This document shows, piece after piece, positions 13,213-52,038 of a stretch of DNA of 63,443 nucleotides; within the stretch, counting starts at the first letter, position 1; every line of letters begins with the position of its first letter. The stretch comes from Chara braunii (lineage: Eukaryota; Plantae; Charophyceae). The stretch covers positions 4,076,659 through 4,140,101 of the forward strand of contig BFEA01000037.1 in NCBI GenBank assembly GCA_003427395.1, read 5' to 3'. A program made the position numbers and the translations under genes. Under the pieces are notes generated by a model, which saw only the letters and a program-made list of their open reading frames with translations, was not told where the DNA came from and ran no database searches.

Positions 13213-14768
13213 CTGCGATGAGGCACAAACACATACCAACAATAATGAATCATCAAACACAAACCTGTAAATTAATTAGCACAACCACATTTGAAGTTCG
13301 CAATCCTGTCCTGATCAACTATCAAACTGACAATCTTATTCGCCTTTACCATCACTCCGGAAATGCATAGCCAGAAAAACGATCTCACGGCGTATTTCCA
13401 TCTCAAGAAACTGCAATCATACCTTCATTCAGTTTACACTGCAGTTTCCCACACAACTTTTAGAACATCAGCCAGGTCAAAAAAAAAAAACAAAAAAAGT
13501 GCTGCTCTCTTTTCGGGGGGCAGGACGGGCGGGCCTTATGGGGAGCAGCACAAAAATAAAACCATAAATACAGAAGCAAAACAATAGCAACAGGACACAA
13601 GTTGCCAGGCAGATAATACCCAGCATGCACGAAAACAAGAACAGAAACCGAGTAAGAGCGGCCAGACAAAGTGTACCCAGCATGCACGCATTGTTTTTTT
13701 TTTCCTTTGAAACAAGAAAGAAACACAAAAGACAATGGGTCTGGCCGATGGACTGGCAAGCATAGACTGCCACTAAAAAAAAACAGAATTCAGCCACGGA
13801 CGTAACCAACAAAAATAAAGCTGGGATGTGCAAAATCCCAATTAGCAAAACTCAATCAAAAACTGGCGGTTAAAGAAAACTGCCCGGCAGCCCTCTCTAC
13901 AGATGTCATTCTCTGCGTTTACATGCTACAACAACTGCAACAGTGCACAGCGCAGATATACCCCCATCTGCCACCATGAGATACACAGCAAATAGGTCAC
14001 ATAGCAGGATCTGCTCAAAGGCCTTTCAAAACAGCAGACAGTCCCTCTTATTACTGATGGCCTCCTGCTCAAGGAATCTTGCCACAGCAAATAGGTGACA
14101 TAATAACAGCATCTGCTCAAAGGCCTTTCAAAACAGCAGACAGTCCCTATTATTACTGATGGCCTGCTGCTCAAGGAATCTTGCCAGGCAGTGCGAGAAG
14201 TGGGTACGCAGCTAAGGTGTAGCCCCCACTGCTATGTCTACGTCTGGGTTTAGGAAACCAATGCATGACATCCAAAGTTGATTCTTACCGGCTCATTGTA
14301 ACCGTTGAATTCATTAACAAAGAACTATACCTAGTCCAGTGGCGCCTGCCCATTAGATCCCTGAGAGATAAGGAAGAGGGCAGCTAAGAGTCCAGGAGTG
14401 TCTCTGCAAGCTGGCTTTAGCGCAAAGGATATGCAACACAGCGTACGGCCAAAGACCAGCACCGAAAAGGAATCCTATTCCCATTATTCAAGGTCGTCAC
14501 TGCTGCCCTTCCATCTCATGACGCTTGATTGTAAAACGGATCATCAATCTTACGGTGCAGATTGGCCATTCATCTTTAAGTACCTCCCCATTCATTGCAT
14601 CCCCCCTTACCCCCTGACCTTCATCCCCGAGCAAAGTGAGAGAACAACAAAGAAAAAACAACAATGGTTACGAGCCTCACCCCTTTCCCAGGCAAGGCCA
14701 TCATACACCGCACTTGAACTAAGTCGAGAGTTGACATCGAATTTTCTTTTTTTCTTTTTTTCCGTCCT

Positions 14769-14866
14769 AAAATTTGGACCATTTCTCAATTTATGTGTCA
14801 TCCTCACGCAGGGGCCATGCTAATCTTCGCTGTGTTGTTCCAATTTTCACGCATTTCCCAAAGTTC
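14769..14866 (-). pseudogene. U6: U6 snRNA pseudogene or retrocopy
   Basis: aaaattggaacaacacagcgaagattagcatggcccctgcgtgaggatgacacataaattgagaaatggtccaaatttt matches plant U6. The ACAGAGA box is changed to ACAGCGA. An A-rich tract follows. Confidence 0.9.
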
Positions 14867-15055
14867 TGGATTTGGATTTTCAATAAGCTTGGCAGCAGCA
14901 CCTTCTGATGTGTCATTGCAGCAAGACTAGTACGGACACTCAAAAACGCACTAGTCGAATACGTTGAACCAAAATCACCACAACACCAAAATAACCACAA
15001 CAGAACTGTTTCATTATGACAACAAGGAGGATCAGGGATGGTGGTTATACTTTAC

Positions 15056-21484: not shown

Positions 21485-22169
<685 letters not shown>

Positions 22170-22641
22170 GAAGGAAGTGGAGCACAGACAGGATCCAGGT
22201 CGTGATGGAAGGTGCTCGTCGGCGTGATGAAGAATCGAGATGGGGACGAGGATGGGTGGGATTTGTTTATGGAGAGTTGGTATTCATTTTTATCGAGTCG
22301 GCACTGGGGGATATGACCGAAAGAGACACAGAGAGAGAGAAAGAGAGAGAGAAAGAAAGAGAGAGAGAGAGAGAGGGCTCAGATTCGGGAAACGCTCTTG
22401 CTCTTACTATTGCCTATGTGAATACTTTCCTTCCCTTTTTTTTCTTTTCCGCCGCTGACCCGAATGCCCTTCTCCCGTCCTTTCCTTTCATCTCGCTATC
22501 CCCCCCTCCCCCCTCTTGCTGCTCTGTGCACGGAGCCGCTGCGGGTCCCCTTGTATTTATCTATTTATGCAAGATTCTCATAGAGAGCTTTGCGGGTAGC
22601 TATAGGCAGAGAGGGAGAGGAGGATGACAATGACGGGCGAC

Positions 22642-22812
22642 TGAGTTTCACCAGCTCATCAGAGGCTGAACCCTTATATATATGTCATATCCATATACTG
22701 CTGTATATATAGAAAAAGAAACATATGTATATAAATATATATTTCAATACGTATATATTAGGGTTCAGCCTTCTGATGACTGAGCAAAACTCTGACAACA
22801 CAATCTGTCACA
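22642..22812. ncRNA. Two degenerate hammerhead copies in opposite orientation around a TA-rich tract
   Basis: Minus copy about 22642-22676 (agggttcagcctctgatgagctggtgaaactc). Plus copy about 22759-22812 (agggttcagccttctgatgactgagcaaaactctgac). Confidence 0.6.
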
Positions 22813-23028
22813 GTCCGCTCGCTTCTTGTCCCCTTCTCCATCTCTACTTGCGGATCACTGGGCATTTCTTTATAACGCTATATTTAGTATTTACGTATAT
22901 ATTGTCAAACAAAACTGCCCTGTAAATCGTAGGCAGATATATACATATATATAGTCAAAAAGAGCTGCCCGGTAAACTGTCGGCAGAGAGGGAGGAGGGA
23001 GAAGAGGACAACAAACGAAGGGCTGTGG

Positions 23029-23086
23029 CAAACTGTTCCGTCGGAGTTTCGCTGACTCATCAGGAGGCTGAACCCTCAACAGTCTG
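23029..23086 (-). ncRNA. Type III hammerhead copy, probably inactivated
   Basis: Same family as 27583-27640, but GAAA is changed to GGAA and stem II has a mismatch. Confidence 0.75.
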
Positions 23087-24182
23087 CAGAATCCCCTAAC
23101 TGATTACACTGTAAGTGATAATCCACCTTAACCCCGGCTGTGGTTAAGCACCAACGACTGCCCGACAACTGATACCCTGAGATGGGCACCAACCACTGCC
23201 CTCAAGGTACCTGTGGCAAAAGCCAAAGCAGACTATCACTCACCCACACCAGATGGAAAAATCTACAGACTGTCGGTATATGTATACATATATATACATT
23301 GTCACAGAACTATTGACTAAGAGCGTAAGCACGTGAAGTAGGAGAAATAAGATGAGCGAAGAAAAGAAAAATGAAAGGACAGACAGGCAAAGAGACAGAC
23401 AAACCAAAATGACACAAAACAGTGTCCTCTTATTCTTTGTTTCACTGTATTCTTATTTTTTTTCAGTGTTTTGCAAAAAACATCACAGTGAACAAGGGAT
23501 AAAAATAAAAAACAAAGGCACATTGAAATCATTCAGTTTCTCAGTCTTCTTAATGCCTCCTCCACCTTGCCTCTAACATATAAGGCTCGCCACGTTGATG
23601 AAATTGAGCGCGAGCTATATATATATATTGTCACATACCTATGAACTAAAAGAGCACACTTTGCAAAACAAACGGTAAACGTAAAATAAAAATCAGACCA
23701 ACATGAAGGGCACGCATACCATTCAATTTTCTCATTCTTTCAACTCCCCCTTCACCGTGCCTCTCATGTACAAGGCTCGCCCCATTGATGAAGTTGAGTG
23801 TGAGCTGCCCGCATCCCCGTGTGCCACAACGGTCCACTAGTACGCTGAGAAAGAGGCAAAGTAAAGGGGGATGGGATAAACACAGGGAAGCGAGACACAG
23901 AGAAGACAGACACAGAACGACGAAGTATGGAGTGTGGAATGAAGATGAAGGCAAAGGAGAGGATAAGAAAAGGCTCAAGAACGAGTCTGTCCTTGACGAC
24001 AGAGAGGACATACATTGTAAGGATGAGGTGGATGAGCACATTGAAGCCGTAGGTGAGAAGAATTCTCAGGACAGCAATTGCCACGTCACCCGGCATTGAG
24101 TCTGCCCAGCATACACACCCGGCAGATGAATATCGATTGCAGGCCAAATAACAAAAGAACGTTCACCACAAAAGACCATGCA

Positions 24183-25860: not shown

Positions 25861-27582
25861 GGCTGTACACTAAGTTTGTCTGCTGTTTGCCTACTCTGAG
25901 CCCTTTGGGACTTGATCCCGTGACCTACAGTTCGTACGTGTTGATTACTAGCTTGGAGTCCTGCTGGGCTTGATCCGTGAACCTGTCATTGGTAGTCTCT
26001 ATTTGGCAGTCTTAGACCCTTCAGGTCTTGCTGTTTTGTCCTTTTCTGCTCTTCTGGAAACTGGTAGGCCCATAGGTCTCTCGTTTGTGTGTCCTAGTCT
26101 TCGGTCCCCGTAGTCTAGATTTCCATCCACATGGATGTAGACAGGTCTTGACTGTTCGGACGTAGATGTTTGCTGTTTCGACGGTCAGATAGATTCGTAG
26201 GTGACTGCTGTGTTGCAGGTCTAGGGAAGTCGGGTAGAAGTAGGGAGAGGCCGGTGAGCTTGAGGCTCTTTCCTCATCTTTTTGGAAGTGGCGATGGGAG
26301 TACGCGAGCGGCACTATTTCCAGCGCTCAGTCTTCTTCCTCTTCGAAGGGGAACTTGGGCTGCCATTGGGCGCCCTGCTGCATGAGGAGGCAGCATCTGT
26401 AGGTCTTCCAGGTGCTGATGCCACTGCCGTCACGTTGCTGTTTGTGGGGTTGAAGAACAGCCGCTTTCTTCCTTGAGCGGCTTGCTTGTTGCTAGTTGCT
26501 GCCATACCAGGGCAGCCATCATCTTCTTCATTGAGCCTCATCTTCTTCTTCACGGTGGTTTGCGGCGCTGCAACTTGATCTCTGGCTCATGCCAGATCAG
26601 CACCTGTACTCACAGGCTCGGGGCATGATGAGATGCTGTTTTCAACAGTGGGCTATCATTGGAGGTTTGGGGTCGTAGGGAAAAGCAGTTTCGGTGAAGC
26701 TTCATTGAAGTGTATTGTCGGGGGTTAATTGGAGATGCTGTTTTCAACAGAGGGCTATCGTTGGAGGCTTGGGGTCGTAGGGAGAAGAGGAAGTTCCGGT
26801 GAAGCTTCGTTGAAGTGTATTGTCAGGGGTTAATTGGAGGTGGAACAGATTTTGTGGTTGAGACTCTTGGAGTTGTTAGGTTCACAGGAGGAGAGCAGAG
26901 GGTGTAATATATAATTGATTGAAACATTTTCTCTCAATTTTTATCTGGTTTTGGCTTCTGCTTTGCAATCTCTCTCCATGGCTATGGTGTGAATCTGCTC
27001 TCTACAGTCGGCCTGTCATTGCAGATGTGTATGGGAACATTTGAATGCGGTTTGGAGTTGTGAATCAGTCGAACACATAACACAGAGACGTGGAACGGAG
27101 GATTAAACGACTCACTTGCTGGAGCATTGCGTAGTTCAAGTTGGCAGTCCCTCATTGCTACTCGTAGGACAGCAATGGTAAAGCCTCTTTCCCTGGTATA
27201 ATTACAATCCTCTGGCTGTAGCAACGGGAAATCAGCATCAAGCTGAAGGGCGATTGCAAGGAAGTCTGGCGGTATATAAAAAGAGCGGTGAATAGCACGT
27301 ACATATGTCTGCCTCCAGTTTTGAGGGCAGTTTTGTTTGACGATATATTGTCACAGAACTATTGATTAAGAGCACAAACACGAAGTAGAAGAAGAAATAG
27401 GATGAGCGAAGAAAAGAAAAAATGAAAGGACAGAGGCAAAGAGACAGATAACCCAGAAAGACACAAAACAGTGTCTTCTTCTTCTTTGTTTTAGTGTTTG
27501 ACGATATATATCATCACAAATAGAACTGCCCGGTAAACCGTAGGCAGAGAGAGAGAAGAGGACAGCAAACGAGGGGCTGTGA

Positions 27583-27640
27583 CAAACTGTTTCGTCGGAG
27601 TTTCACCGACTCATCAGGAGGCTGAACCCTCAACAGTCTG
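27583..27640 (-). ncRNA. Type III hammerhead ribozyme with intact core (GUU site)
   Basis: CAGACUG-UU / GAGG-guucag-CCUC / CUGAUGA / GUCGG-ugaaacu-CCGAC / GAAA / CAGUUUG. Stem differences from the 4644 copy preserve pairing. Confidence 0.9.
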
Positions 27641-28123
27641 CAGAATCCCCTCACTGATTACACTGTAAATGATAATCTACCTTAACCAAANAGGAGGCTG
27701 AACCCTCAACAGTCTGCAGAATCCCCTCACTGATTACACTGTAAATGATAATCTACCTTAACCAAAATCAAAGTAGACTATCACTCACCCACACCAGATG
27801 GAAAACTCTACAGACTGTCAGTTCACACCCCATCACAAGCCAGCAAAACATCCACGAAACAAAGAAAGGTCTGTCACAGCCAAAAAATACACTCCAGACA
27901 CGCCGCTGGCACTCGAGGCACAGCATGGCCGCCTAGTAACGGCCCCGACCACTGCCGCTCGACCTGACCGGAAAAAAACGTAGCAGGAAGCTAGCGAAGT
28001 CGTAGTATATATCGTCACAAATAGAACTGCCCGGTACACACTATAAATCGGAGCGCAAAGGCGGAAAAATACAAAACAAGAAAAGGAAAAGAAGGAAAGC
28101 CCCACCTGTTCATCACCTCTTTC

Positions 28124-28201
28124 GTACAAGGCCAGCCACGTGGATGACAGGTTGAGCGCTGGCTGCCCCCATCCCCGTGTGTCACAAGGACCCACTTGCA
28201 C
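28124..28201 (-). ncRNA. Unidentified conserved pseudoknotted RNA motif (representative copy)
   Basis: Other copies at 23582-23616 (partial), 23768-23843, 29461-29541, 31056-31122, 31571-31649 (all minus) and 49581-49646 (plus). Compensatory changes GCCAGC/GCUGGC, GCUCGC/GCGAGC, GCCACC/GGCGGC and GUC/GAC versus GCC/GGC. Confidence 0.6.
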
Positions 28202-28409
28202 GCAGCCAAAAGGCAAAGAGGTAAAGAAAAGGAGGAAACCAAACCTGACAGGGAAAGAAAGCCTATCAGTCAAACAAAGCAAATGAGACATCCCACAGAT
28301 AATCCAATTGTCACAAAGCAAATAACACATCCCACAGATCAGCATTTTTTTTTCTATTCTTATTTTCTTATTTTCTTATTTTCTTATTTTCTCTTTTTTT
28401 TATTTTCTC

Positions 28410-28598: not shown

Positions 28599-29341
28599 TT
28601 AAAAAACAGCAGGACGTTCATCACAGTGTGGCATCATGCAGTTCTGATAGCGTCCTTGGGCACAAAAGGGACAACGTATATCTGGGTGATAGGGATGTGT
28701 ACAATGAGAAAATGTTGGACACCCTTCAGTACAGATGGCGGCAGTCGCAATAGATTGGTAATGGCTATGGCATAGGTGATGCATTCCACAGCCAAGGCGC
28801 ACTGCATCACTGTCCCGACAGGTGTCACAAGAGAGTCGGTCAATAATCCAAAATAATGTATGATTCGGCAATGCACGCAAAAATTCATTTACGTCAAAAA
28901 TAGCCTGACTCATCGTCCCACCATCCCACAGTTCCCACTGGGCAGCTGCACGAACGAGTGCCATATGATGCCCGGGTCTGTGTAAAATACAGGCAGAAAT
29001 ATGAGGATGGTTATTGAGGTCATCGCCTGGCGTCGCATGATGCATAAGAAGGTGGCGGCCGTGCAACGCTAACTGTAAGACATTTACAGTAAAACCTCCT
29101 GAGGTAGAGTATACTTACTGCCTTCAGGAGGTGGACTATTATGATCATACAACAACTGATTTTCAACAGCGACAAGCTGATACTCAGTCGTGACAAAATG
29201 GGAAGCAGTATAACATTGACGATGATAAGCCTGTAGGCAGACATTTGTGGCTGTCAAGCCACAAGTATTTGGTAGATCTGCCCGCAGATCTGATTCGGTC
29301 ACCACTGGAAAGCTAGGTCTGATCTGGAAGGGTCTGCGCAT
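28599..29341 (-). pseudogene. Josephin (MJD/ataxin-3-like) cysteine protease followed by a Cys/His-rich motif, with one frameshift at about 29085-29120
   Basis: Joining ORFs 29084..29341 and 28599..29066 gives TCGLTATNVCLQ..YT...F....QL...E, GGFTVNVLQLAL and ACILHRPGHHMALVRAAAQWELWDG. These parallel ataxin-3 LCAQHCLNNLLQ..FS...L....QL...E, GFFSIQVISNAL and SFICNYKEHWFTVRKLGKQWFNLNS. Downstream motif HHLCHSHY...CTEGCP...CTHPYHP...CPFC. Confidence 0.65.
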
Positions 29342-30075
29342 ATATATATTGTCACATGAATATCAGAGGGCAAAGGCAAAAAAAAACAGAAGAAAACAAG
29401 AAGAAAAATCAATTCGTTTTTTATCGTCTTCCTTACAACTCCCCCTATTCAAAACCTCTTGCATACAAGGCCGCCCACGCGGATGTAGGTTGAGCGGTGG
29501 CTGCCCCCACCCCCGTGTGTCATATCGACCCACTTGCACACAGCCAAAGGGCAAAGAGGCAAAGAAAAGAGGAAGGGATCAGCCAAATACAACAAAACAG
29601 GGGGCAACAAGCAATAGCACCAAAAACGGATCCTAGATGACAAGTCCCACATGCAAGCACCGCCCCTCCTCCACAGGCCAAACGACAGGACAAGACCACC
29701 CAGGACAAAACTCTAGTAAGCAAAAAAAGAAAAATCCCAGATTACATATCTATATACAGCAGCTGGCCTTGTTCGTCATCAAGACGTAGGTATTCCCATT
29801 TGTAAACCATTCCTACTGGGACAAAAAACATAAAAGACAATCCCAGATGGCGATTCCCACATGAAAGCACCGCCCCCTCACACAGGCCGAACAACGGGAA
29901 GCAACCAACTAGGATGCCAAGACAACAAAAGAGAACCCGGATGACTGGTCCCACATGAAAGCACTGCTATGCTTGCCAAAAGCGACTGAGCAACGGGACC
30001 AAACCAGCCGGGATGCAGACAGGGTTACCAAAACAAATTAGTAAAAAAACGGAACCATACATATATTGTCACAGA

Positions 30076-30780: not shown

Positions 30781-31861
30781 GTCACAGAGCTATTGACTAA
30801 GAGCGTAAGCACATGAAGTAGAAGAAGAAATAAGATGAGCGAAGAAAAGAAAAATGAAAGGACAGACAGGCAAAGAGACAGACAAACTAGAATGACACAA
30901 AACAGTGTCCTCATTTTCTTTGTTTCACTGTATTCATATTTCTTTCAGTGTTTTACCAAAAAAAAAATACACTGAACAAAAGATAAAAATAAAAAACAAA
31001 GACACATTGAAATCATTCAATTTCTCAGTCTTCTTAACTCCACCATGCCTCTAATGTACAAGGCTCGCCACGTTGCCGAAGTTGAGCGCGAGCTGCCCCC
31101 ATCCGCGTATGCCATAACAGCCATGGGAAAGAGGCAGAGTGAAGGAAGACGTGTTAAACACAAGGAAGAGAGGAGCAGAAAAAGAAAATCGATAGGCAGA
31201 CTTAGGAAGAATAAGAAAACGTGACACAAACATCTTCTTTATTTTACTGCATCTTTCTTTCTTTCACAGTTTTGCAGTTTTGGTGAAGAGTACCACGTTC
31301 ACTTTCCAGCGCACCTGCACTTCTTCACTTTTTATTCTCATTTTCACCCTTCAGACTTTTTCTTTGAGGGTGTTAGGGTGCACGGTACAAACAAAGTAAA
31401 ATGACACGAACTTATGTTATATATGTATATATATATTGTCACATATTTATAGACAAAGAGCTCGCTTCGTGAAACAAACACTAAAAATACACAAGACAAA
31501 CATGAAGAGCACACTGAAACCATTTATTTTTCCCATTCTTCTTCTAACTCCCGTTCCACTGTGCCTCTCACATGTGAGGCTCGCCACGTTGATGAAGTTG
31601 AGTGCAAACTGCCCGCATCTTCGTGTGCCATAACGGCCCACCTGTATGCTGTGAGAAAGAGGCAGGGTAACGGGGGAGGGTTTAAACACTGAGAAGAGGG
31701 ATGGAGAGAGGACAAAACAAAGAACGACCAAAGGAAACTGAGGAGTGCAGAATGAAGATGAAAGCAAAGAAGAGGATAAGGAAAGGCTCAAGAATCAGTC
31801 TGACCGTGGTGATAGAGAGGACATACATTGTAAGGGTGAGTTGGATGAACACATGGGAGAC

Positions 31862-39800: not shown

Positions 39801-40909
39801 ACGAAGAGCCAAAGAGGAAATTCGAAATGATGAATATGCTTCCATAACTGACGAAGTGGAAATTCGTTTGCCTAACTCGGTTCACATTACTTCAAAGTTG
39901 AGTGGTCAAGGGGGTAATATAACGCGTCATTCGGGATAGGGTGGCCGGCAGTGTTCCGAATGAGGGTATGCCTAAATCGGTTCACATTACTTCAAATGAG
40001 GGTATGACGTACGTACCCGGTCGATGTATGAAATGTACGCACATGTAACTCTTGACTGATAGACAAATCAAGAGTTCGAAACCTGCCGGATACCGTAATG
40101 CTAACGAACGGCTATTCAATTTAGGCCACCCGCTTCAGGAGGATGGATGTGCTGCCCGAAGTCCCTTTTTTGGGGGACGAGGAGCCTAGCAAACTTTCAG
40201 GGATATCTTCAGCGACCAATTGAAGAAATACATCACATTCTTCAGCCAGCAGCCCTAGCGCCTCTAATAATATATTTGCACTCGCTCTCATCTCCATCTG
40301 TGCTCAAGTGCCTCCCAGAAAAGCACACCAATAGCTGAGAGAAAGTTTGTTTGCTGGAATGCCTCTCGTTGGAATTTTACCTTTCTTTTTCCAGTTGAGG
40401 GCGTTTAAACAAGCGTCTGAACAAATGGAGGAACTGGCGCAAACAGCACAAGTGCAGCAGGGTGTTGGGGAGGCCCTGTAAGCCGAGCGAACTGTAGAGG
40501 TAGGGAGGGAGGGAGGGAGGGAGGGAGGGAGGGAGGGAATCGAGGGAAGTATCCCAAGTTTCAGCCCCTACACATCCCACATAGGTTGCCTTTGACCGCT
40601 ACTGTTTCTGGACTGGCTAGTCCAAGCACGACACCTTGTACAGTGGGGCCCGCCCGGCTCTCGAAAGCGCACATACAGCAACATGTGTCTGAAATGGAAC
40701 GCGCACGCATGGTAGGTGCACAGCGAACAACGTATGAGAGGGGACTGCTGCTGCACCCGTGATGGGAAATTCTAGTAAGCGAAAGGACATACATAGACGA
40801 GGGGGCGGGAGGGCGAGAGATAGATAGTGAGAAAAGGCATAGTAGCAAATAAAATGCGTGCACTGTAGACTCTCGGGTTTGTTTCCTGTCCTGAATGTTC
40901 ATTACTGAC

Positions 40910-42193
40910 CTGTCCAAGGTCTGCGAGCAGCTGTCCGTCGGCTCCAACGCAAGAGAGATTCCACCTCAGCAAGGGCCTGAGCCTTTCGTCCATTCTGCAC
41001 GCCCCGACTGTCTGCCACTGGAACGTCTGAACCCAAGATGCCACAGCTCCTCCTCCCATTCCCATAGGATTAGTGGAACACCTGGCACTTCCCTCGGCAG
41101 CGGGCTGCAGCCCCCCAGCCGAAGAAACGCCAGGAGCAGCAGCACCCCCAGCACCACCATCACCGCGTCCTCCATCTCTCGCTTCCCCTGCCAAGCCATC
41201 ATTCCTCAGTTCGGCCTCCATGGAGGCCGAGCTCCTCCCTCTCGTCGACCCACTTCTACTGGCAACCCGACCACTGCCCCTCCCCCCAACAGTCACACCC
41301 ATCTGTCCACACGATCTCGAATGCAGGAGCGATCGTCGACGGCACCCACCATCGCGATCCTCCCCCGCTCCTCCTTGATTGAGCATCCCGCCTCCGGTTC
41401 CCGCCATCAACCCCTCGTCGTTATTCCTTGAAGCCCCTCCCACGTATGCCCAAGGGAGCGCAGGCGCTCTCCCATAGACCTCGCCCACTGCTCTCAAACC
41501 AGAGGCAAGGCGTTGATCCCCTCCCCCTCCAGAGCGATCGAAGCAGTCCCACCCCCCCTCGTCACTGCTCTTCGACGTCGAAGCCACACTAGACGACCCG
41601 TAGCTGTTAGCCACAGACGAAGACGATGACGAAGTCGAGAGAGGGAGAGAACAAGCCGGAGAAGAACAAGCGTTTAGCTCCACGTCCGCCCGATTTTTCT
41701 CTCTGTTATTGTTACTTGACTCGCTTCGCCTTGCCTTGTTATCGATATTTCGCCCCATAACCCCATCGCTGCTACGTTCTGACGGGCTACGGCTGCCACC
41801 TGCTAAACCGGGTGGTGTTGAGGTCGGCCCTGCTCTAGCCGGTAACCTGGGAGGAAGGCCCGTGGTTTTCCTCCCGCCGTCATACCTCTCCAGTAACGGG
41901 AGGATTCCTCTAAGTCGATGGCTTCGACTCCTATCCCGATCCCGTGAAGAGCCCGTTCCGGCGGCGGAACGCGACTCCCAACCAAGATTGCTGGTTGCTT
42001 GCCAAGCCGACCCTTCCCGTCGATCTTCGTCCTCGTCGCCATCATGGGGGATGCCGTCGCAGTCAACATGAGGTCCAGGCACTCGCCCTCCGAAACACCT
42101 ATCGTGCCGGAGCTGATCATTCCTCCCAGCATCAGCCATCGCCCTTTGACTTCGGGCGACTCCAGGGTCCTCGTCTCGACTGCTCCGGACTAA

Positions 42194-42228
<35 letters not shown>

Positions 42229-42754
42229 CCCCTATCTGCGAGCGGTAGTTTTGGTACCCCCTCCTATTACGAAACGAGAACTTCTTCCTCTCCTCCTCCC
42301 TCTCCTCCTCGGAGGAGGAAGAGGAAAATGGCGACGACGGCAATTTGGACGGAGCTCGACAGTTAAAAGGGGCCGCACCATCCTGTATCAGAGCACTGGC
42401 GCAGTCATCTGCGCCTCCTCGTCCGCCGCCGAGAACCCATCCACGGCCGTCTCCATCTCTAGTCGCCCCTCCTCCCCCTACTCCCCCTCCCGCCCCTGCT
42501 CGACAGTTCAAAGAGGCGGCACCATCCTGTATCCGAGCACTGGCGCAGTCATCTGCGCCTCCTCGTCCGCCGCCGAGAACCCATCTACGGCTGTCTCCAT
42601 CTCTAGTAGCCCCTCCTCCCCCTCCTCCCCCTCCCGCCCCTCCCCCTCCGTCTATTCTCACCAGGCCCCGTGCCCCCTCTTCCGCCACCCTGGGTTCTTC
42701 AATGACCGCTTCTCCCGCAGCACCGTACTCCCCGTTACCCCTGGCGTCCTCCAT
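40910..42754 (-). CDS. Exon 1 (615 codons) of a large plant-type gene with an RPN13/Pru-like domain; Gly/Ser/Arg-rich N-terminus
   Basis: Starts at ATG 42754 and is open for 1845 nt. Ends ...WQTVGACRMDERLRPLLRWNLSCVGADGQLLADLGQ at a phase-0 donor CAG|GTCAGT. This end resembles, from memory, an uncharacterised land-plant family (At2g39950-like; unverified). Confidence 0.8.
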
Positions 42755-49317: not shown

Positions 49318-49410
49318 GTGAATGGCTTTTTGTGCCTCACGCGTTGTTACAGCCAGTCTTGTCCTTTTCTTCCTCAATGCCTATATTTTTTTCAATGACT
49401 CTCCGTGTAT

Positions 49411-49810
49411 GTAGGGTTCTGACTCCTGAGGAGTTGGTAGGTGAAACGTCAAGGAAACAGTTTGTCACAACCACTCCCTCGTTCGTGGTTCTCTTCTCCC
49501 TCTCTCTCTACCTATGGTTTACTGAGTAGTTTTGTGTGACGATAAACTATGATTGAGAGTGTGTGACAATATGTATCTTCTGACACACAGGGATGGGGGC
49601 AACAGTCAGCAGTCAACGTGTGTCATCCACGTCGCTGGCCTTGTACGTAAGAGGTAGGTGATGAACACGTGGTCCTTCCCTTGTTTTCCTTTTTTTGTTT
49701 TGTCTTTTTCCGCCTTTGCGCTCTGATTCCCTGTGTGACAAAGATATATAGATGAGTCGATGAAACTCCGACGAAACAGTTTATCACAACCCCTTGTTTA
49801 TTGTCCTTGT
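49411..49810 (+). mobile_element. Second cluster of the ribozyme-bearing retroposon family
   Basis: Degenerate hammerhead 49411-49465 followed by the family tail ending tgtgacgata. Pseudoknot motif 49581-49646 with a tail homologous to 28012-28120. Partial hammerhead gatgagtcgatgaaactccgacgaaacagtt at about 49750-49782. Confidence 0.75.
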
Positions 49811-52038
49811 ATGTATGTGTGTGTCCTCCATCTATGGTGGGGAGCATCACCTGCTGGAAAGCGGGTCCAGCGTCCCTAGAATACATCTCATCTTGATTTT
49901 CGTTCATTGAGTAGGGCGTTCTATTCGGTTGAAGACAGTAGTGGTGGCGGACCACACTGTTCGCTCTCTTTGGGGTAAACAAATGCAAAGGTTGTCACGG
50001 GCGGTGGGCAGAGATGAAGAAGGGAGGGGGAGGAAGGACGGGAAGGAGACAAGGCGGGGGAATAGGATCTACTAGTACTACCTTTTTGCAATGTGTACGT
50101 CCATAATGAGTGTGATGAGTGCATTACCTTAGGAAAACTCAGGTAGGTGCAGAAGACAGAGCGGATGATGAGCGCTACTTCAACAAGTGATATAAGACGT
50201 ATGGATATCAAGTATTTCATCAATTTCGTAAAACGAGCACACCAACCGCAGTGTTTTTTTTTTTTAAGACTGGCACTGTCTTTCTGTGTGAGCAACAACC
50301 CTTCACACCCTTGTACGATAATAATGTATATTGAGAGTGCATTGCAACATTGATTGTTTGGGTTATTGGTATCTCAGTCTTCCGCTATGCTGTCTTATAC
50401 TTTGTGAGAGAGGTCGGTTCTTCTTCTGTCTTGCACCTTTACGGTATGCAACAGTTTGCTATTGGAGCGGACCTCTCAATCGGAGGATGCACTCAATCAG
50501 CTAGCTAGTTTGCTTCATCTATTCATCTTTGATCTGTCTTTTGCAACAATATCTGAAAGTCTGTGATCGTAGCATTTCCATGGATCTGAAAATTTATGAT
50601 AATTGCATTTCGTTTTTCTGAAATTTTGTATATTAGTATTTCGTTTTAACACAACAATATGTGTGTGTGCGTGTGTGTCTGTTTGTGTGTGTGTGTGATG
50701 CTCGATTTGTTGCCCGGTGTTCATGCGTGCTTATATTCGTGCTTTGTCTTCATCGTTGGTCATTGTCTTCACTACACACAGTCTGTTGTCCTTTACTGCT
50801 CGACGGAGAGGGTGGTCGGTCCTCATCGTGGATCAATTTCATGCTCAATGGTCATCGTGCTTTGCATAATTTTGGTGTTCATCGTGCTACAATTTACTGG
50901 TCGGTGCTCATCTGTGCTTGGATCCGTGTTTTGCCTTCATTGCTGCTCATCATTTTTGTACTTTGATGCTCTCCTTGGTGGTCATGTTCACTACACACAC
51001 TGTGTTCTCCTTTGCTTGTCAACAGGGAGAGTGGTCAGTGGTCATCGTGGTTACTATGGTGATCTCTTTGGTGCTTATTGGTCAATCGGTAAATTTGAAC
51101 TTACATTTTTGTATGTTCCAACACAGCGATGCTCATATTTTTCTTCCTAAATTTTGGATCTTTGAGTTTGGGTTTCAATGTATATGAATGTACTCTCGTC
51201 ATTTTTCAAATGCCCTCTCTCTCCCCTACTTGTACTTTGTTATTCTCTCTTCCTGCTTTGTCTGTTCATTTGTTCTTCTGCTCCTTCCCCCCCCTCCCCA
51301 AATCCCCCACGATCTCTTCCCGATCACATATTTCTATCACTTACAGTTCTGGCTTTCCCTCAAGACCTGCTATCTCCCGTCACATATTTCTATCATAATG
51401 GTCACTGTTAACATGCCCTCTCTCGACAATTTTTACCTCTTTATTCCACCTCCATTTTCTCTTTGTCTCTCTATGTATACCTCTCTCTTTGTACGCAGCT
51501 GAAGTCTTTTGTTTACCCCTTTTTTTAAAACTGTATGCACACACACTCAGTCCTTCTCTCTGTCTGTCGGCATGGTCCTTTAGCTTTTGGCAGGCAGTAG
51601 TATCCGAAAGACCACACTTTCCTCCACTGACAAAATGTCAGCTCACACTCCAAAAATTGCAAAGTAACAACTGTGATATTTATGATGACAAAAAAGCCAT
51701 TTAAAAAACAAAAAACAAAAAAACATACACACTCTTCCTCCTCCCCTACTCTACTGTCGCCTTTCCCCTTTCCCAAGTGCATTTTTGACATCATTCCTAA
51801 GCCTCCTGTCAAATCTCTCATGTAAACTTATCTGCTCCCATCTACTACGCAATAACAGGTCGTTCTCCTTAGTTGCACGTCCTCATATCTACCATAGCCA
51901 CACGTTCGCACATCTCCCTCCCTCCCTCATTTTCCAAACAATCAACTGTACCAACGCTTTACATCACTTACGATAACTTTGCCTGAAAACTGACATCATC
52001 AATCAACTCACACGCATTCAAACTATGCTCGCTGCATT

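Follow-up and report, generated by a model that had tools for sequence, protein, structure and literature searches.

The locus at positions 27583-27640 of a 63,443-nt stretch of the Chara braunii genome (contig BFEA01000037.1; the whole stretch is called the window in the following) raises the question of what kind of genetic element carries a type III hammerhead ribozyme in a streptophyte alga. Type III hammerheads are found in viroids, satellites and angiosperm LTR retrozymes, whereas Penelope-like elements carry minimal type I hammerheads (PMC7761336; 10.64898/2026.07.22.740005), and for algae only “isolated examples” of hammerheads have been mentioned (Cervera et al. 2016, PMC4918200). The initial annotation, made from the sequence alone, drew the same line between type III and Penelope-associated type I ribozymes, in agreement with these sources. 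It proposed that the window contains a family of eight type III hammerheads, at least two of them intact, in non-LTR-like units inserted into microsatellites.

The covariance search with the Rfam model Hammerhead_3 (RF00008), by which this proposal was to be checked, gave four matches in the window, with 48.5, 45.8, 35.4 and 32.5 bits, one of which reaches the gathering score of the model (48.5 bits). At the gathering thresholds, the Rfam scan of the window returned two families, i.e. U6 snRNA and Hammerhead_3 (4645-4699), and the scan with an E-value threshold added three Hammerhead_3 matches (27584-27639, 4760-4814, and 23030-23085). The U6 spliceosomal snRNA gene (14768-14871, minus strand) has 77.7 bits against a gathering score of 44 and spans the full length of its model. 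All four full hammerhead motifs, two intact and two damaged, are on the minus strand; the opposite strand of the window yielded no Hammerhead_3 match in the Rfam scan. Our own covariance model, R1, was built from these four full copies and run on the window without filters. The two intact motifs are:

4645-4699, minus strand: intact type III hammerhead with a GUC triplet, (GT)n subfamily (Rfam; minimum-energy fold)
27584-27639, minus strand: intact type III hammerhead with a GUU triplet, (TA)n subfamily (Rfam; exact core; fold; R1 with 87.1 bits)

The motif at 27584-27639 scores 45.8 bits (E = 7.7e-07) and thus falls 2.7 bits under the gathering score, and the motif at 4645-4699 is exactly at it (E = 1.3e-07). 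Both contain the hammerhead core CUGANGA...GAAA together with an NUH triplet, GUC in the 4.6-kb copy and GUU in the 27.6-kb copy. The latter consists of a CUGAUGA...GAAA core, the GUU triplet, a stem III of 7 bp, a stem I of 4 bp with a 6-nt loop, and a stem II of 5 bp with the loop UGAAACU. GUU is a less common cleavage triplet; it counts among the NUH sites accepted as active (PMC3138052). The model alignments as well as the folds show three helices, of which I and II are capped by loops and III is open, and for both intact copies the minimum-energy and the centroid structures are three-way junctions. The 27.6-kb copy retains the hammerhead fold within 186 nt of native sequence, in which flanking pairs and an outer 6-bp helix lengthen stem III. 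The fold z-scores are modest, -1.5 and -1.6. The exact pattern CTGATGAG, followed after 8-30 nt by CGAAAC, occurs twice in the window, compared with 0.03 occurrences expected from shuffles. The proposal of a full type III hammerhead at this locus, with a canonical core, a 7-bp stem III and closed stems I and II, is thus confirmed by the match to the Rfam model, the intact core and the minimum-energy fold.

The initial annotation had further stated that the differences between the two subfamilies preserve pairing and that the loops uuca and ugaaa are conserved, and both statements hold. The intact copies differ at nine positions, none of which touches a conserved core base. Stem II has one double compensatory change (C-G to U-A) between the subfamilies, and stems I and III have three one-sided changes that keep the pairing (G-C or A-U to G-U). 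Loop 2 reads UGAAACU in one intact copy and UGAAAGU in the other, and loop 1 retains UUCA or UCA. In the given register, 95% of the cells are paired across the four sequences, versus 34-60% in slid registers. Covariation among these four sequences was equalled by 250 of 500 shuffles and has no statistical weight, and it was rejected as an independent proof of the structure because only four sequences are available. The structural support therefore comes from the Rfam model and the core, and not from covariation within the window.

The remaining pieces of the family are two damaged full-length hammerheads and five partial copies, and fuzzy search, self-BLAST and the covariance model agree that there is nothing further:

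4760-4814, minus strand: full-length damaged hammerhead in the upstream unit of a 115-nt tandem (Rfam 35.4 bits; fold not a hammerhead)
23030-23085, minus strand: full-length dead hammerhead (Rfam 32.5 bits; hammerhead fold lost)
22760-22900, plus strand: short decayed copy after a (TA) run, starting 2 nt past the predicted cut (R1 24.4 bits over 22755-22806)
22575-22674, minus strand: short decayed copy after (TA)n, starting 2 nt past the predicted cut (R1 23.6 bits over 22638-22675)
49413-49545, plus strand: short decayed copy, starting 2 nt past the predicted cut (R1 18.2 bits over 49406-49463)
49751-49830, plus strand: copy truncated within the ribozyme core (R1 26.7 bits over 49741-49782)
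27692-27715, minus strand: 5′ half of a hammerhead in a 76-bp duplication (own model; self-BLAST; tandem repeat)

In the copy at 4760-4814, stem III contains an A x G mismatch and stem II a C x A mismatch, and the core (CUGACGA, which is allowed) is kept. At 23030-23085, the core GAAA has become GGAA (A13 to G), and an A x C mismatch interrupts stem II. The copy at 49751 begins directly past the tail of another, Penelope-like element plus (AT)4. The extra half hammerhead at 27692-27715 belongs to a 76-bp unit that is duplicated at 27616-27767 with 100% identity and a single N (27691) exactly at the joint, and this duplication is probably an artefact of assembly or gap closing. The count of eight copies with at least two intact therefore stands: we count nine pieces, the ninth of which is probably this artefact, and two of the nine are intact.

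To describe the units that carry the ribozymes, the following features are needed:

27505-28005, minus strand: longest element copy in the window (sequence; self-BLAST)
22950-23276, minus strand: second copy of the (TA)n subfamily, more 5′-truncated (88% identical to the 27.6-kb copy)
4610-4835, minus strand: two 115-nt tandem units of the (GT)n subfamily (Tandem Repeats Finder: period 115, 2.0 copies, 94% matches)
27526-27547, minus strand: conserved 3′-tail hairpin CUGCC ... GGCAG, then a terminal motif ending in GTGAYGATATAT (alignment of seven tails; context fold)
28006-28035, minus strand: tail-only fragment of the hammerhead element, flanked by the long copy and the end of a Josephin-type Penelope-like tail (97% identity with 27505-27535 over 31 nt)

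The longest copy consists of an upstream body of about 365 nt, the hammerhead, and a tail of 80 nt that ends in (TA)n, and it contains no ORF of at least 70 aa on either strand. The 23-kb copy starts at about 23276, has its own (TA)n at the end, and is distinguished from the 27.6-kb copy by an 83-nt indel. Each 115-nt unit of the (GT)n subfamily begins with a 25-nt leader, which is followed by the hammerhead; 8 nt further on, the unit runs into (GT)n. From the ribozyme to the 3′ end, the distance is 8 nt in this subfamily and about 80 nt in the (TA)n subfamily. The tail hairpin recurs at 22960-22985 (minus), 49500-49525 (plus), 27312-27335 (plus), and 22905-22932 (minus), and in the tail of the 49.5-kb copy one of its pairs shows a compensatory change from G-C to A-U. 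The hairpin may be a recognition hairpin for reverse transcriptase.

The 5′ ends of the copies vary (28005, 23276, 22760, 22674, 49413, and 49751), while the 3′ ends always lie in (TA)n or (GT)n. The stacks contain head-to-tail, head-to-head and tail-to-tail arrangements, and tail-only fragments are present at 28006-28035 (minus), 27307-27345 (plus), and 22897-22938 (minus). At 22638-22806, two cut-site-started copies form an inverted head-to-head pair with about 85 nt of TA-rich DNA between them, a layout that matches the “adjacent inverted truncated copy” arrangement of Penelope-like elements. At 21487-21977, a 167-nt unit is present 2.9 times, each time closed by a long (AG)n run, and this looks like a further short element that was inserted repeatedly into a microsatellite. 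A tRNA-derived SINE head was also considered and rejected, as the window contains nothing tRNA-like according to ARAGORN.

Chlamys-type elements are marked by variable 5′ truncation, by copies in partial tandems and in inverted order, and by microsatellite targets, and the hammerhead copies fit this pattern. Target-primed reverse transcription as in Penelope-like elements is indicated by the shared 3′ ends and variable 5′ ends, the stacking in microsatellites, and the lack of LTRs and a primer-binding site. The description of the units as non-LTR-like and microsatellite-inserted was accordingly correct: the window has no LTR pairs of these units, and their ends are 3′-anchored in (TA)n or (GT)n. 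A full-length element cannot be defined from two long copies, so the status of the units as short and non-coding is putative.

Between the (TA)n and (GT)n subfamilies, the alignable block comprises only 65 nt with 86% identity, which consists of the ribozyme with 2 nt upstream of it and 7 nt downstream, and the flanks are unrelated. Between the two (TA)n copies, 3 of 56 positions differ in the ribozyme, compared with 24 of 138 in the flanks (Fisher p = 0.04). The ribozyme is thus the sole block that is kept across two backbones with different target repeats, and it is better kept than the flanks, which implies past selection on it in the source copies.

Upstream of the long copy, and adjoining it, lies the 3′ part of another retroelement with an ORF at 28602-29066 (minus strand). 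The ORF itself has no Pfam match, and it is 70% identical to a 261-aa ENA protein that has a sub-threshold match to Josephin (25.2 bits, with a cut-off of 26). This Josephin-type neighbour fits the published description of Chlamys-1_cBra. Its non-coding tail is present in five copies of two subtypes in the window, and where the ends of these tails are readable they equal the terminal motif of the hammerhead element, roughly YTGTKTGAC(R)ATATAT, in (TA)n. The likeness between the tails of the two elements is limited to the last 15-20 nt. Two other copies of the Josephin-type tail lack the 31-nt stretch that 28006-28036 shares with 27505-27535, and this stretch is therefore assigned to an inserted tail fragment of the hammerhead element and not to the neighbour's tail. 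Within the Josephin-type tail itself, about 70 nt are strongly conserved, many alignment columns being invariant in the five copies (28101-28237, 29441-29574, 49577-49728, 23768-23861, and 31056-31108).

A Pfam search of 21 ORFs found no reverse transcriptase and no GIY-YIG endonuclease, either attached to any copy or elsewhere in the window. If the hammerhead copies are members of the Penelope-like group, they would thus be non-autonomous or truncated. Their proximity to the Josephin-type element and the short common terminal motif suggest a Penelope-like enzyme partner of this kind. Two further long ORFs in the window, 140-3559 (minus, 1139 aa) and 40772-42754 (minus, 660 aa), are rich in Ser, Pro and Gly, of low complexity, and have no Pfam match; they may be large host exons or spurious.

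Three mutually diverged copies (22760 plus, 22674 minus, and 49413 plus) have as their first base the second nucleotide past the predicted cut, for which the context is GUU, then G, then AGGGUUC.... Directly upstream of these starts, TA repeats are found in two of the three cases, and the third has TG/TA-rich DNA without a clean repeat. Three diverged starts 2 nt past the cut are expected if a cut RNA with a 5′-OH end is copied to its end. They are indirect evidence that the ribozyme, either the GUU version or its source, cleaves in vivo before reverse transcription. The three starts could instead go back to one short master and not to three separate cleavages. Copies that start at the cut site have no 5′ strand of stem III and are consequently dead on arrival, so that most of the pieces found here are non-functional.

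Taken together, we consider it probable, at roughly 65%, that the copies are decaying short retroelements, which were inserted by Chlamys-style target-primed reverse transcription and carry a conserved type III hammerhead in their 3′ module, in two subfamilies. The motifs with their integrity, the boundaries of the copies and the common tail motif are shown by the sequence, and we infer that the RNA is cleaved in vivo, which elements donate the enzymes, and from what source the RNA is transcribed. The element RNA would probably be made by read-through or from tandem copies, and it would cut itself after GUH. A reverse transcriptase and an endonuclease acting in trans, most likely donated by neighbouring microsatellite-targeting Chlamys elements, would then prime on a microsatellite at the 3′ tail and copy the RNA to its 5′ end. 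Cut RNAs would give rise to copies of about 135 nt that begin at the cut and could never cut again, and uncut or religated RNAs would give rise to longer copies with the whole ribozyme. The ribozyme may serve to free the element from read-through or tandem transcripts, it may yield a unit-length RNA that circularises, or it may just ride along.

Several other explanations compete with this reading of the copies as short, trans-mobilised retroelements. The copies could be 5′-truncated 3′ ends of the autonomous published element Chlamys-2_cBra or of the endonuclease-less PLE-X type, so that a separate non-autonomous family would not exist. Craig et al. (2021, PMC8557442) place a canonical hammerhead at the 3′ end of Chlamys-2_cBra and describe most copies of Penelope-like elements as heavily 5′-truncated; the ribozymes in the window likewise lie 8-135 nt from the 3′ end, with variable 5′ ends. 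Against this, about 365 nt upstream of the ribozyme contain no ORF of at least 70 aa, both (GT)n units begin at the same point, 25 nt before the ribozyme, and the two subfamilies have unrelated flanks and only the ribozyme in common. None of these three points is decisive, and we regard truncation of an autonomous element as somewhat unlikely. Lower still is our estimate for a retrozyme-like cycle, in which a tandem transcript would be cut twice and the unit RNA, circularised by a host ligase, would serve as a circular template, much as in the non-LTR retrozymes of metazoans. The best candidate for such a unit is 4692-4806 (minus, 115 nt): two hammerheads of the same polarity are 115 nt apart, the fold of the monomer pairs both strands of stem III across the would-be junction, and the long stem III (7 bp plus extensions) holds the cleavage products together. 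In addition, animal non-LTR retrozymes have been argued to derive from Penelope-like elements (10.64898/2026.07.22.740005). The 115-nt pair is, however, the single two-unit tandem and the only hint of circularisation, its upstream ribozyme is damaged, and, given its (GT)n flanks, the duplication can be put down to unequal exchange. Cut sites do not delimit the apparent tandem at 27616-27767, which has an N at the joint. We thus judge a retrozyme-like cycle to be quite improbable.

Plant-type LTR retrozymes, i.e. type III hammerheads located inside LTRs and mobilised by Gypsy elements, would share the identical topology and the green-lineage host, and the 23030 and 27584 copies do have the same orientation at a distance of 4.5 kb. 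These two copies are, however, only 88% identical, differ by the 83-nt indel, each have their own (TA)n, and lie beside tails of unrelated elements. Moreover, the ribozyme is located 80 nt from the 3′ end and not within a repeat of about 350 bp, and no copy has a tRNA-Met primer-binding site nearby, the sole match with one mismatch (at 7602) being at chance level. A direct pair of LTRs of about 350 bp is absent; what the 23-kb copy shares with the 27.6-kb copy amounts to about 190 nt plus about 57 nt. An LTR retrozyme is thus extremely improbable. The same low standing applies to the idea that the motifs arose by chance or are ribozymes domesticated by the host, with no relation to mobile DNA. 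Nothing speaks for it beyond the modest fold z-scores of -1.5 and -1.6, while Rfam E-values of 1e-07, two exact matches against 0.03 expected, and nine related pieces with common flanks and tails speak against it. The family is real, and both the LTR retrozyme and the chance motif are rejected as readings of it.

Relatives were also sought beyond the window. A pattern of stem II and loop 2 (5 bp plus UGAAAYU) gave more than 160 matches in metagenome and viral (IMG/VR) contigs, all of which were rejected as relatives because they are hammerheads of prokaryotes or phages without relation to this family. With a rough script, the 112 non-redundant matches were sorted into about 85 of type I, about 15 of type III, and 12 unclassified. 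The occurrence of this stem II and loop 2 in unrelated hammerheads shows that the module is generic. One type III motif among them, L121/L150 (of the loci L001-L160), agrees exactly with the 27.6-kb copy in stem II and loop 2. A stricter pattern that includes stem I had no match in 185,579 prokaryote genomes or in IMG/VR, and a protein-word search for assembled copies, based on a 47-aa stop-free frame across the ribozyme, gave no candidates. Close relatives of the whole ribozyme were thus not found in the prokaryote genomes, IMG/VR, or metagenome contigs searched.

A type III hammerhead in microsatellite-inserting units of the Penelope-like style crosses both pairings made in the reviews, i.e. 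type III with the LTR retrozymes and viroid-like RNAs of flowering plants, and type I, mostly minimal, with Penelope-like elements and the non-LTR retrozymes of animals. The origin of the plant type III motif has been left open, with horizontal transfer as a suggestion (PMC7761336), and the family in the streptophyte alga C. braunii is a candidate for an older green-lineage home of this motif. One scenario, which we put forward as a speculation with the odds clearly against it, is that the type III hammerhead of the green lineage was present first in Penelope-like non-LTR elements of streptophyte algae that target microsatellites, only later in the LTR retrozymes of flowering plants, and from these in viroid-like RNAs. 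The ribozyme would then be a portable module, exchanged among backbones whose target repeats differ, and its cut RNAs would be direct templates of reverse transcription. The role of hammerheads in Penelope-like elements is stated to be unclear (PMC8557442), and by counting copies that start at the cut site, cleavage before reverse transcription could be read directly from a genome. This window is of limited value, with two of nine copies intact and part of the story published.

The published part concerns Penelope-like elements of the Chlamys clade. According to Craig et al. (2021, PMC8557442), this clade of the green lineage is characterised by 5′ truncation, partial tandems, adjacent inverted truncated copies, and a bias for microsatellites. 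Three types are described there for C. braunii: a Chlamys type with a long ORF that has weak homology to Josephin and no hammerhead, a Chlamys type with a gag-like ORF and a canonical hammerhead at the 3′ end (Chlamys-2_cBra), and the endonuclease-less PLE-X type with canonical hammerheads, which is also present in spike mosses. In the main text, the topology of the ribozymes is not stated. The initial annotation had called the combination unusual, and this has to be divided: the link between hammerheads and Penelope-like elements in C. braunii had already been published, for the 3′ ends of two Chlamys subclades, whereas, to judge from the main text, neither the type III fold nor the short non-coding units appear to have been described, and both may be new.

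The copies in the window resemble Chlamys-2_cBra and PLE-X, as these are described there, in the 3′ ribozyme, 5′ truncation, partial tandem and inverted copies, and the microsatellite bias. Compared by description, they differ in lacking an ORF and in forming two short subfamilies with only the ribozyme in common; in addition, (CA)n or (C)n is given there as the target of Chlamys, while the targets in the window are mostly (TA)n. The type III topology, stable helices, a loop 2 of the UGAAA type, and a non-coding, non-autonomous nature are shared with the angiosperm LTR retrozymes (PMC4918200). In contrast to these, the units in the window lack LTRs, a primer-binding site, a polypurine tract, and 4-bp target duplications, they would be inserted into microsatellites by target-primed reverse transcription, and they are far smaller than the retrozyme RNAs of 600-1000 nt (PMC4918200).

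Short non-coding units, the link to Penelope-like elements, the lack of LTRs, and one 115-nt tandem pair are reminiscent of the metazoan non-LTR retrozymes (PMC7229834; PMC7761336; 10.64898/2026.07.22.740005). The hammerheads of the latter and those that Penelope-like elements carry in their pseudo-LTRs belong to type I, are often minimal, have a weak stem III, and work as dimers (PMC7229834; PMC7761336; 10.64898/2026.07.22.740005), whereas the type III hammerheads of the window, with a stem III of 7 bp, are predicted to cut as monomers. Metazoan retrozymes form long tandem arrays, and the copies in the window are mostly dispersed or stacked. A retrozyme of the metazoan type, with type I ribozymes in tandem units of 150-400 nt, was therefore rejected for this family, which has type III ribozymes and one two-unit tandem of 115 nt. 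The core, the helix lengths and loop 2 are like those of the type III hammerheads of viroids and satellites (RF00008), in line with one copy at the gathering score; unlike these, the motif in the window is encoded in genomic DNA, has one polarity, and is embedded in a retroelement. We read the finding most readily as one variant of the association already known between Penelope-like elements and hammerheads.
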